From: Amoebophrya sp. A120
Lineage: Eukaryota > Protista > Dinoflagellata
Assembly: GCA_905178155.1 (NCBI GenBank)
Contig: CAJINV010000003.1
Coordinates: 11,520,733-11,584,732 of the forward strand
Length of the DNA: 64,000 bases
Direction: 5' to 3'
The position numbers and the translations under genes are program-made. Position 1 is the first letter of the stretch; the number at the start of each line of letters is the position of its first letter. Below, one piece after another: positions 52,701 through 56,508 of the stretch. The notes below the pieces were generated by a model. The model was not told where the DNA came from and did not search any database. It saw nothing but the letters and a program-made list of their open reading frames with translations.

Positions 52701-55700
52701 TCCTCCGTAGATTTCAAATTCAGGGTCGTAGCCCTCCAGCTCGTCCAGAAAGAACTCCCGACTCGCGCCAAACAAGCCCCCGGCCATGATGGGACTCGCG
52801 CTGGGCTCGAACTGCGACCCGGACCGGCGGGGGACGGGGGACTGGCCCAGCTTCCAGGTGAACCCGAGGACCCCCAGGCCCCCGGCGCCCGCGCCGGGAT
52901 GGTAGTTAAACGCGTCGGAGCCGATCACCTCGATGGAGGGCGTCACGACATTCTCCTTTATGGGATTCGCAACCGTTACACTCTCAATTGTTGCAACATG
53001 AATTTGCGATGCAAGAACAGCAACAGCGAAAGGGGCAGGCTTGCACTTTGCGCCTCACAAATTCGGCACAGGTTTCCTCGACGCTGAAGCTGATGTTTAA
53101 AAGCACTTCGAAAATTTGTCATGCGAAATATCTTGATCACCCGGTGGCTTATGGTCGTAACTTCGCATGACAAATCATGCTGTACGCAGGTGAGAATGTA
53201 ACGTGTGACGAGACTCCCATAGTCTTGTCTTTCAGCATGTGTGCCATCAGGGGTTCGAGCCAGTGGCTGCGGCACTCGATGTGGGAGTCGAGGAAAACCA
53301 AATACTCCCCTACCGCAGCGCGCGCGCCGGCGACCCGCGCGCGCATCAATCCTCCGCGGACCGGGAGCCGGAGCAGCTATGATTTGTAACAACGTCCACA
53401 CCCCCTAGGCGTAATGCAAATCCGCATGGTGAGAATATTTCTCACGCGGAACCCCATGAGAGGCATTTCCTGGCCACGTTTTGGAATGTGTCATGCTCCA
53501 ACCAGCACTATATGCTGCTAGATCTGTGACGCTGCTGAACTACCTGAACAGCATGACACTACGAGGCCAAACTTGTCATGCGCAACAGCCAAAGCTGGTT
53601 GCTTTGTCTAGCGGATTCCCCATCTTGACGCTGGCGTGGGGGCGTTTTTCCTCAGGATAGCAGCTTGGTTTTCTTCGTGTCGGTCTCGATGAACTTTTTC
53701 AGCTTCTGGTCCAAGTCCGGCTTGAGGCTGAAGTCGGACGCGTCGTCCACTAGAACCACCTCTTCCAACAGCGAATCAGGCGTACGGTTTTATGCATTTT
53801 TGCAAAAGGTGTATCACAATCCCATGCGCATTTTTGCAATCTTCATGGACAGAGAAAGATAAGCGCAAATCTCATTCATATCCCAGCTGATGTTGAATAG
53901 AATGAACATGAAGATCTACTATAGTAGCATGACAAATTGCATTTGATTTCGAATGATACACAGTATCACATCTTCAATCATCTGTGCGAAGATTAATATA
54001 TTACGTTTGCAAGTCGTAGATTCAAGACGGTGACTAGTGATCGGATTAAGGTCGAGAGCAGTTCGTTGTAGAAGACGATAACCACGGAGGCGGTGACGCC
54101 GTCTGCGGTTTGAAGCAAACCCGACGTCTCCTCCTCATCGGAATAGTCAACGCACTTGCTGTGCCGGCCTTCCTATCAAATGTAAAAATGTCTGGGTCTG
54201 GAAGAATGCAACTTGTGATGCTGCGTTTCGATGTCTAAAAAATTTGTGTTGCATGAGCAGCAAAAGGAATCTAATGGGTGCCACGCGGAGAGGGCATTTG
54301 TCATGCGGAATGGGCATCAAGAATCCCTCAAAAAACCTGTGATGCTAGGGCATACATGACAGGCATCATGGGTCATGAGAAATATGCACGACAAATCTTG
54401 CATTCTTCCAGACCCAGACATTTTTGCATTTGATACTTCCGGAACAGGGCGGACGAGCGGAAGGGAATCTGACGTCCAGCTGTTGAAGCAATACCTGGAT
54501 TTGTTTTTCGCTGCGTTCCTTCCGAGTGTTATCCAGACAGAGCCAACACCGCCCAAGCGGCCCGTTGGAACGAGCCTGAAGGGGCTGGGCGAAGCAGGCC
54601 GGACCTAGCTTCCGTAGCGGGGAACGGCCCACTCCATCACCACTTGGCCCCCAGGGCAAGACCCCCCAGAACCCCACCTCCGGTGGTTGAATGGGGGGAA
54701 CAGCGCCAGCCCCAGCCCCACTTGCCCCCAAGGGAAGACAGGCAACCGACTGAATCCAACCCGCACAGTATGCCCAGGCAGCGCAACCTCGCTCCCAAAA
54801 GCACCTACCCCTCGTAATCTCCGGGCCCCTGACTCGCCGTGCCGAGCGCACGTAGCCCCTACCTCGCCGACCAACGCTAGAAGCGCGAGCATCTGCAACT
54901 CTAGCGGGAGCAGTGTATGCGAGTATCCGAAAAAGGAATGCCCTCCCACAGAAGGAAGCCATACTACTGGTGCGCGTCCTGTAAGCAATCTCCAACAACC
55001 CGCACGAAAGGTCCGCTCTCCCCCGTGACCTGGTGAGATAAACGACTTCCCGCGTAATGGCTAGCACGGAACGGCCTTGCGCCACAAGAAAAACCTAGGA
55101 TGATCCACCACCAAGCAATAGACAACAAGATACTGTGGTCCCCAAGACCAAAATCCTGAAAAAGTTTCTGCGTTGAAAGCGCCGGCCCAGAGCCCCCGCG
55201 CCGCGAAACTCAAAGTGCAAAGCGGCCACAGCCGGGCAACAAAACACAGTAGAAACAGTGAAGCGGTAAGACAGCACACCCGCCAAAAACCCGAGTATGA
55301 GAGTACCACAAGGCTTCCGAATGTGGCGGGAACTTCAGTCCCCTCTAGGGAAAGCCGGCCTGGGCGGAGAAAGAAAATGAAGGAGAGGCGAAACCGGCGC
55401 CAAGCCGTGGGCCGCGGTTGCGGCAAAGAGCAAGGGAGTGCGCCATTAATAGCAGGGGCAAACCGAGAGAGACGCAGCAGGCGCTTCCAGCACGAGCAAG
55501 ACACACGGCTTCCTCGTGAAGCGACCGGAGCAAATATCTACCTCTTCTTAAACCCAAAGCCCGGCGGCACGAAAAAGCCCCAGCAGGAATGTAGAACCTC
55601 AGAGAATCTGACGTCCAGCTGTTGAAGCAATACCTGGATTTGTTGATCATATCAACCGGGTTTTTTCTCCCGCTAGCCAGTGAGTCCATCTGGTGCTCAG

Positions 55701-56508
55701 CAACAAAAGATCGTGGCCAGCTGCAAGCCTACTTACAGTCTTAATGCACCAGCTGCGCCCATCAAGGCGCGACGACGACTGCTAGTCTCTCTCCTGTGGA
55801 GCCAACATGTATTAACTGGCTCATCACACGATCGATTGCCGATCAGGGCCTCGTTGGACGATGTCATTGTGATTTTCTGATCGTTGCCACAGATGAAGTA
55901 GTGGCTGTTTGTACCTACATCCAAGAATAGCCAAATTGGAATTTCATCCATTTGTTTCTTTCTCACCCTGTATGCGCGGTCCTTTTTTCCTCTTTCGTCA
56001 TCTCGCGCCCTTCTGCCCATTTCCTCTCGGGTTGCCAAGTGTGCCCAAACTCTTTCTCGGGGTCCACCGGGCGCCAGGGTTTCGACAGAATGGCCAAGTC
56101 TTCAAACACCTCCTCCTCAAATCGGTCGGCCTCGGCGACCCGCCGCGCCCGCAGGTCGCTGCAGGACGCCGCCTGCGTTGCGTTCCGCTTCTTCAAAGCC
56201 AGCTCGAACTCGTCCTCGTCTTCCACCGTGCTGCATTTCTTCTCCTCGACCGTCGCCAGTCGCCAGTACTCCGCCGGCCGGCTCCACCAGTCCAGGTCAC
56301 TGACGTCTTGCTTAGCAGCTGCAGCCGCGTGGAGCAATGCCGCTGCTGGGAGCAGTAGTGCTGTTCGGAGGACGAAAAGGGAGACGACCGGCGGCAGAAA
56401 AAGGCCTATTGAATGGTAGCCAGCACGCGCCGCTGCTCCGGTGCTGCTTCCTCCTCGGGTCGTTGAGAACAACATGAAAGCAGAAGATAAACGTGACGCA
56501 CGGCTCAT
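49759..56508 (-). CDS. Polypeptide N-acetylgalactosaminyltransferase (GT27) with ricin-B lectin domain, many exons
   Basis: Motifs [55 protein letters not shown] (DxH), [39 protein letters not shown] and LKCKDFHWY, plus lectin CMDT...[12 protein letters not shown] and an N-terminal hydrophobic segment. Junctions near 55.7, 51.5 and 50.3 kb are unresolved. Confidence 0.88.
50010..50141. mobile_element. Introner, family D (132 bp)
   Basis: TATGAACTGCAAAATTATCGT / ACGATGCTTTTGCGCAGCATA. Flanks AATCT/CATCT. Confidence 0.85.
50557..50730. mobile_element. Introner, family D (174 bp)
   Basis: Shares GCAATACAAATTAGCTCAGCAT and TTTTGCACAGGATA with the element at 34103. Flanks CCTCT/CCTCC. Confidence 0.85.
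50832..51033. mobile_element. Introner (202 bp)
   Basis: TATGCATCGCAAAAC / GTTTTGCGCAGGAGGATA. Perfect TSD TGAAT. Frame SEF|KDC. Confidence 0.85.
51875..52109. mobile_element. Degenerate introner (235 bp)
   Basis: TAT...ATA ends, weak TIR, flanks CAATA/CAGCG. Removal restores conserved AAA|VWMDEY. Confidence 0.65.
52501..52693. mobile_element. Introner, family D-like (193 bp)
   Basis: TATGCGTTGCAAAAG / CTTTTGCAAGGCATA. TSD decayed. Removal restores GGEE|[10 protein letters not shown]. Confidence 0.8.
52959..53221. mobile_element. Introner (263 bp)
   Basis: TATGGGA...CGTTACACTCTC / GAGAATGTAACG...TCCCATA. Flanks TCCTT/GTCTT. Frame KDKT|NVVTP. Confidence 0.8.
53378..53659. mobile_element. 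Introner, family C (282 bp), inverted relative to 10945
   Basis: Right end GCGTTTTTCCTCAGGATA is the inverted match of the left end of 10945 (TATCCTGAGTAAAAACGT). Perfect TSD GCAGC. Frame KL|LRLP..GLMRAR. Confidence 0.9.
53791..54018. mobile_element. Degenerate introner (228 bp)
   Basis: TATGCATTTTTGCAAA / TTTGCAAGTCGTA. Flanks GGTTT/GATTC. Removal restores conserved VLN|RTP. Confidence 0.7.
54174..54435. mobile_element. Introner, family A (262 bp)
   Basis: TATCAAATGTAAAAATGTCTGGGTCTGGAAGAATGCAA / TTGCATTCTTCCAGACCCAGACATTTTTGCATTTGATA. Perfect TSD CTTCC. Confidence 0.95.
54465..55644. mobile_element. 1,098-bp GC-rich insertion flanked by a perfect 41-bp direct repeat of exon sequence
   Basis: GAATCTGACGTCCAGCTGTTGAAGCAATACCTGGATTTGTT occurs at 54465-54505 and 55604-55644. 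Both copies encode [13 protein letters not shown] of the GalNAc-T. Confidence 0.85.

Follow-up and report, generated by a model that had tools for sequence, protein, structure and literature searches.

The 64-kb stretch of Amoebophrya sp. A120 DNA analysed here (the window; positions below refer to it unless a contig is named) carries on its minus strand a gene that, judged by similarity, is a single-copy polypeptide GalNAc-transferase-like gene (GT27). The catalytic exon matches one locus only in a search of the genome, one exon matches Pfam family PF00535 (Glycos_transf_2, GT2) at 2.5e-11, and another matches the PDB structures of GalNAc-T9, T10, and T1 at 3e-14 to 9e-11. Motifs of the GT-A domain are present in the form of FLDSHIE (DxH) and YGGEE, and the exons that carry these and the later motifs are open in a six-frame reading. 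Exon 1 (55967–56508, minus strand, as are all features described below) ends at the donor ACAGG/GTGAGA, in which the slash marks the cut, and shares 45% identity with protein g6041 of Amoebophrya sp. AT5.2, a 200-aa fragment that ends after exon 1. Intron 1 lies between this donor, after 55967, and 55673. Exon 2 is divided by a large insert into a first part of 39 nt (exon 2a, 55634–55672), which begins at the acceptor ctag/C and which splicing of the insert would turn into a micro-exon, and a second part of 58 nt (exon 2b, 54437–54494); exon 2a was delimited by frame reasoning, and the joined frame was checked. The exon-2 open reading frame (ORF) has no match in PDB. It contains FN..SD....R..PE, which we take, from its position before exon 3, to be the conserved N-terminal motif of GalNAc-transferases. 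Exon 3 (54020–54172, with an approximate 3' boundary) aligns with GalNAc-T chains 8uhv and 1xhb, and the GT-A catalytic fold begins with it. Between exons 2b and 3 lies an introner with terminal inverted repeats (TIRs) at 54174–54435, whose 38-bp TIRs are 97% complementary and which is flanked by a 5-bp target-site duplication (TSD), GGAAG; interpreted as a GT...AG intron, it runs from 54436 to 54173 with the donor G/GTATCA, and its removal leaves one extra codon. The exons were searched singly against databases and the joined model was examined by frame check alone, in which the exons around the insert, joined by script, gave an open frame with no stop.

The insert within exon 2 is bracketed by a perfect 41-bp direct repeat of host exon sequence (54465–54505 and 55604–55644, identical at 41 of 41 positions in a script comparison), the copies of which enclose 1,098 bp, just as the preliminary description of this locus had reported. 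The repeat search itself returns a slightly longer pair, 54462–54505 and 55601–55644 (44 nt with one mismatch, at a spacing of 1139 nt), so that the additional claim of a 44-bp repeat with one mismatch holds as an alignment; the three extra bases, however, most probably reflect the 5' terminus of the element itself (TCT...), aided by chance, since a related copy on C4 begins with CTCTGAGGTTCTAC at the same point. The length of the duplication is 41 bp, or 40 bp if its last C is derived from the element. The enclosed segment (54506–55603) shares the orientation of the gene, with a 5' end of TCTGAGGTTCTAC... and a 3' end of ...GGAAGGAACGCAGCGAAA, and has a GC content of 59%, compared with 50% for the window. 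As had been noted, it has no TIRs: the repeat search finds no inverted repeat at its ends, which read TCTGAGG... at the 5' side and ...GCAGCGAAA at the 3' side. Within the window, the 41-bp pair is the sole long direct repeat with an insert between its copies; all other long repeats are either tandem or TIRs belonging to the local introner family. The insert contains no ORFs of note and no long ORF with a family match, and a tRNA scan of it found none. An Rfam scan at a permissive threshold gave two chance-level matches only, with no family and no hammerhead motif, and a fold of the whole 1,180-nt stretch showed no helix joining the ends in the manner of A120 introners.

The inserted DNA had been described as GC-rich and unrelated, of which the first part stands and the second does not, as the insert belongs to a dispersed repeat family. 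The search for further copies and for the lengths of their duplications that the preliminary description suggested, in which the insert was compared with its own genome (115,520,608 bp), returned 42 matches, nearly all of which begin beside the downstream repeat copy and end at differing points. The family is non-coding and comprises about 27 close and 15–20 diverged copies, the 3' ends of which, ...GGAAGGAACGCANCGAAA, coincide to the base and the 5' ends of which vary. In gene sense, the 3' consensus is ...CTGGATAACACTCGGAAGGAACGCA(G/A)CGAAA, beyond which the flanks are unrelated, and approximately 25 copies end at the identical base. A pattern search of the genome for this 3' end found 42 ends (22 with at most one mismatch and 20 with two or three, the latter mostly from two diverged subfamilies) versus one for the reversed control. 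No poly(A) or simple-repeat tail is present, the copies ending in CGAAA (one in TTAAA) right at the duplication; no long terminal repeat (LTR) occurs on the family copies, and a genome pattern search found no inverted partner of the terminal 22-mer near any of them. The conserved 3' module extends over about 137 nt (54506–54642) and is 100% identical to C12:1567238–1567374. RNAalifold predicted stems for 17 of these tails, with no compensatory change, since the module is too conserved to reveal any.

Upstream of this module, the copies are considerably more heterogeneous. Among eleven bounded copies, every pairwise similarity reaches the 3' end and extends 134–673 nt upstream. One of them, C10a (671 nt), corresponds to the present insert with a simple truncation on the 5' side, matching its positions 444–1098, and the 5' parts of most others are mutually unrelated. 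The 5' end of the insert recurs in the rearranged C4 copy mentioned above; with its 3' tail lost and no flanking duplication, that copy is uninformative on the anchored end. Unrelated MITE-like repeats lie upstream of it. An ORF scan of the 1.5–10 kb upstream of other copies yielded no coding sequence or reverse transcriptase (RT).

Members of the family are flanked by duplications of 25 to about 130 bp, one copy of which directly follows the 3' end, with its partner 0.64–1.4 kb upstream. These duplications are perfect in the C21 copy (47–49 bp) and the C5 copy (45 bp), match at about 69 of 70 positions in the C3 copy and at 69 of 71 in the C14 copy, comprise 23+25 bp with an indel in the C8 copy, and measure at least 25 bp in the C4 copy; those of the C10 copy (~75 bp, ~80% identity) and the C7 copy (~130 bp, ~90% identity) are diverged. 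Tandem units of element plus duplication occur at two loci (C4:103–105 kb and C10:2097–2098 kb). That several duplications are perfect points to recent activity of the family, and at the present locus the 41/41 identity of the repeat bears out the earlier view that the insertion is very recent. The absence of inverted repeats and the duplications of 25 to about 130 bp likewise uphold the distinction that had been drawn between this insert and the TIR introners with 5-bp TSDs. In the literature on the genus Amoebophrya, no paper describing duplications of 25–130 bp was found.

The same comparison between loci bears on the assembly itself, since the A120 assembly consists of ALLPATHS-LG scaffolds closed with GapCloser (PMC7789003), and a repeat contig could have been misplaced between contigs overlapping by 41 bp during Illumina scaffolding or gap closing. 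Such an artefact is very improbable. At least eight further loci, located on other contigs, show the same architecture, with repeats of 25 to 130 bp that invariably adjoin the same 3' base; the repeats of older copies are diverged (80–97%), which is impossible from overlap, and both junctions of the present insert are seamless and without N.

Taken together, these observations argue that exon 2 was very recently invaded, in sense orientation, by a retroposon-like element that is non-coding and non-autonomous, plausibly giving rise to a newborn intron, a reading to which we assign a probability of roughly 0.5. From the constant 3' end, variable 5' ends, lack of terminal repeats, variable duplications, and lack of coding capacity, we infer that the element arrived by target-primed reverse transcription with an enzyme provided in trans. 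The first nick would fall at the left edge of the segment to be duplicated and prime reverse transcription of the RNA, starting in its conserved 3' module; the other strand would be cut tens of bases downstream (between 25 and 130 bases from the first cut across the family), and fill-in would duplicate the stretch between the two cuts. Each insertion would regenerate the target site at the upstream repeat copy, and re-nicking there could account for the tandem units. Several better-known types of element were considered and set aside: a SINE, because the tRNA scan and Rfam revealed no Pol III head from tRNA, 7SL, or 5S; a Helitron, because duplications are present and there is no CTRR end; a DNA transposon with a fixed duplication, because duplication length varies five-fold; and a group II intron, because there is no structure match.

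Some features sit uneasily with target priming, namely a tail that is not A-rich, 5' parts that are mostly unrelated, and the lack of a nearby partner, none of the 106 RVT_1, 7 APE, and 6 GIY-YIG matches in the genome being less than 10 kb from any of the 42 tail matches. The APE-type LINEs include ones near C3:8.30 Mb, C3:11.70 Mb, C5:6.19 Mb, and C11:2.97 Mb, and GIY-YIG ORFs are located at C2:0.45 Mb, C25:0.03 Mb, and C5:2.28 Mb. These same features lend some weight to an insertion at the DNA level, by which a piece of a transposon was captured at a widely staggered double-strand break, or moved by aberrant one-ended transposition, and fill-in of the overhangs produced the duplication. We consider this unlikely, as random capture does not yield approximately 25 copies with an identical end base and a variable other end, one copy corresponds to another shortened at its 5' end, and the terminal 22-mer, having no inverted partner nearby, does not mark the end of an element with TIRs. 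Of the two origins that the preliminary description had entertained, break repair capturing random DNA is accordingly a poor fit to copies that end at exactly the same base, and a retroelement with long TSDs is supported by a mobile family whose target duplications are regularly very long.

Read on the minus strand, the 41-bp repeat is AACAAATCCAG/GTATTGC..., and by chance it contains AG/GT, such that the upstream copy could provide a donor, CAG/GTATTG, and the downstream copy an acceptor, CCAG/G. The 41-nt repeat allows 42 equivalent cut registers, and only one of these (register 11) has GT...AG ends, at 55633 and 54495. The candidate donor GT, in the context CCAG/GTATTG, occupies 55632–55633, and the candidate acceptor AG, in the context AAATCCAG/G, occupies 54495–54496. 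A cut from G55633 to G54495 removes exactly 1,139 nt (3n+2), as the preliminary description had proposed, and a script check shows the frame restored with no stop. Use of this pair would remove the element together with one copy of the repeat and restore the original mRNA; the first 11 nt of the upstream TSD copy (55604–55644) would then be exonic and its other 30 nt intronic, and in the downstream copy (54465–54505) the first 11 nt would form the 3' end of the intron and the other 30 nt would be exon. The 1,139-bp offset had also been said to cause a frameshift if unspliced, and indeed, when the insert is retained, the reading frame enters it and runs to a stop at 55345–55347, after 85 codons. 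At the DNA level, the insertion might also be reversed by recombination between the two 41-bp repeats.

Exact removal of the 1,139-nt segment in at least part of the transcripts, which would make it a newborn intron, appears to us about evenly balanced or slightly favoured. Its principal rival accepts the same insertion as unrescued, the insert being retained or mis-spliced, transcripts ending within it or changing frame, and the allele a recent null or split one that became fixed by drift in the strain under culture; this falls somewhat short of an even chance and is a serious contender. AGGT is found in just 8.5–10% of the 41-mers of the gene or the window, so that its presence within the duplication is, for an unrescued allele, a coincidence of about one in ten. 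The flanks of the candidate sites, CAG/GTATTG and CCAG/G, are decent, and the neighbouring introner likewise has a GTAT donor. The host gene is single-copy and conserved, with all its other exons intact, which speaks for splicing and against a null allele; a perfect repeat may, however, mean that the insertion is too young for selection to have acted, in which case an intact gene proves nothing. An open-frame test across the empty site of seven copies placed only the present one in a recognisable coding exon. The six other duplication-bounded copies showed no convincing ORF across the empty site, where fast-evolving short exons could mask a coding context. A sole copy in a clear coding exon is what would be expected if exon hits that cannot be spliced are purged. 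More generally, the genome of A120 is rich in transposon-derived and non-canonical introns (PMC7789003; PMC12130899), non-canonical introns make up more than 60% of the total, and no U1 was identified (PMC7789003), so that splicing in A120 is permissive.

Other properties of the segment weigh against splicing and correspondingly favour an unrescued allele. The acceptor is preceded by a purine-rich stretch, with no pyrimidine tract, that contains several AGs, including the GCAG of the element's own 3' end (ACGCAG/CGAAA, 54511–54512), which lies 16 nt upstream of the exact acceptor and whose use would leave 16 further nt in the mRNA and cause a frameshift; intron 1 of the gene is also without a pyrimidine tract. 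By the standards of this genome, in which non-canonical introns average 240 nt (PMC7789003), a segment of 1,139 nt and 59% GC is long and resembles an exon, and its removal would leave a micro-exon of 39 nt. The identity of the repeat copies, indicating a very young insertion, and the stop reached after 85 codons of read-through are both in keeping with an allele that has not been rescued. Protein collections are similarly silent on the junction: exon 1 searched against 1.84 billion representatives retrieved just the 200-aa AT5.2 fragment, with no A120 protein showing the junction, and the exon-2 read-through ORF had no match among 5.8 billion proteins, a search in which only proteins of 70–222 aa were visible, such that the length filter or clustering could hide a protein with exon 1 or 2. 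At the transcript level, template switching by RT across the 41-nt repeat could fake the exact junction, and RT-PCR might thus give a false positive. Intron birth is plausible here, and a long-TSD retroelement as the source of the insert is supported.

A broader proposal is that the family represents an undescribed retroposition pathway in Amoebophrya with target duplications of tens to over a hundred bases, that such duplications often include a proto-splice site, so that hits in exons would frequently yield introns removable exactly from the outset, and that it constitutes a general second source of introns beside the TIR introners. We hold this tentatively and regard it as rather doubtful. 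If it were true, the locus would present an intron within a few generations of its birth, with both splice sites derived from the host. Newborn introns that retain two intact footprints are seldom encountered, most having been inferred long after the event. In this gene, the sequence before insertion, the element, and the candidate splice sites can each be read base by base, such that the locus could reveal whether a random hit in an exon can be neutral from birth. Duplications of 25–130 bp would give each exon insertion a chance of about 10–20% of carrying its own AG/GT pair, compared with less than 1% for duplications of 5 bp. The length of a transposon's footprint would thereby be tied to its potential to create introns, and this family-level result may matter more than the single locus. 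The published intron survey of this genome (Farhat et al. 2021) covered introns of 40–1000 bp only (PMC7789003), and introns like the 1,139-nt candidate would therefore have been missed.

The arrangement can be compared with several known systems. In the transposon-insertion model of intron gain, an element inserts into AGGT, which becomes duplicated on both sides (reviewed in PMC3443670). The present case resembles this model in that candidate splice sites would come from a duplicated host proto-splice site, with exact removal and an unchanged coding sequence; it differs in that the model involves short, fixed duplications that hit AGGT itself, whereas the 41-bp duplication merely contains AGGT, which lifts the probability per exon hit from below 1% to about 10%. 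In intron gain by tandem duplication, a duplicated exon segment with AGGT similarly offers both donor and acceptor (PMC3443670), although here the copies are separated by a transposed element and not by duplicated exon sequence. The preliminary description had presented the locus as a second route of intron gain, which in principle is not new, given that AGGT insertion is a textbook model (PMC3443670) and that non-LTR-derived introners have already been reported in Amoebophrya sp. A120 (PMC12130899). With the introners of A120 it shares the organism and the position of a mobile element in a coding exon, its removal being a candidate only (PMC7789003; PMC12130899). Classic A120 introners have inverted repeats, direct repeats of 3–5 nt, and many intronic copies (PMC7789003; PMC12130899). 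As judged against these published descriptions, the present family is set apart by its lack of inverted repeats and its duplications of 25–130 bp, and, among the family copies inspected, only the present insert lies in a clear coding exon.

In its constant 3' end, 5' truncation, variable duplications, and non-coding nature, the family is similar to non-autonomous non-LTR retroposons such as those of 'stringent' SINE/LINE pairs, but it differs from these in having neither a tRNA, 7SL, or 5S head nor an A-rich or repeat tail, and no partner LINE was found. LINEs usually leave target duplications of 5–20 bp, and those of the present family are several times longer. In Penelope-like elements, the distance between first- and second-strand cuts is variable, which leads to variable duplications, and 5' truncation is frequent and tandems occur (PMC8557442). 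The A120 family shows no hammerhead motif, the few GIY-YIG ORFs in the genome are not linked to it, and, unlike the pseudo-LTRs of Penelope-like elements, its tandems are units of element plus duplication. By analogy, Penelope-like elements are nevertheless the closest described parallel for its cut spacing, truncation, and tandem organisation (PMC8557442).

Homology between exon 1 of the host GalNAc-transferase-like gene and g6041, a 200-aa protein model of Amoebophrya sp. AT5.2 (P0001), ends exactly where the exon itself ends (...KAHEG, window position 55966), and past this motif g6041 goes on as apparent read-through. Comparison of the two sequences suggests that the position of intron 1 is conserved between the host gene and g6041, and that the public g6041 model is truncated in strain AT5.2.

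Next to exon 3, on the minus strand, lies a TIR introner (window 54169-54440) with 38-bp TIRs that are 97% complementary and a 5-bp duplication, GGAAG. It can be parsed as a canonical intron, G|GTATCAAATG...CATTTGATAG|G, and splicing at these boundaries would excise the element plus 2 nt, so that the 3 nt that stay behind supply one additional Glu codon (PE|EG). Exon 3 (...VTVLN) is separated from exon 4 by an intron, also on the minus strand and at about 53787-54019, whose edges are AAT|CTACGAC...AAAAC|CGTACG; with no usable GT or AG at these boundaries, it is a non-canonical intron of the same gene.

Inverted ends of about 55 bp bound a MITE-like element of about 308 bp, found at L023:3400-3740 (G000:C4:5656400-5656740) and many other loci of this genome; 8,487 first-look candidates were counted genome-wide, and scored copies share about 90-94% identity.

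Copies of the 1,098-nt insert's own family occur as head-to-tail units, each comprising the element and a 66-bp duplication, on C4 (L037/L038, G000:C4:103201-104768; 153 nt identical between units) and C10 (L042/L043, G000:C10:2097257-2098342; mismatches at 2 of the 66 repeat bases). These arrangements suggest either that a single site was hit more than once or that the long repeats underwent unequal exchange. Near the copy with a 45-bp duplication (L047, G000:C5:6557587-6560702), the translation contains an X run (withheld or masked bases).

Within the insert lies TCCGTGCTAGCCATT (window 55055-55080, minus strand), a sequence with a loose likeness to the dinoflagellate spliced leader; it is here that the similarity of the C21 copy to the insert starts.
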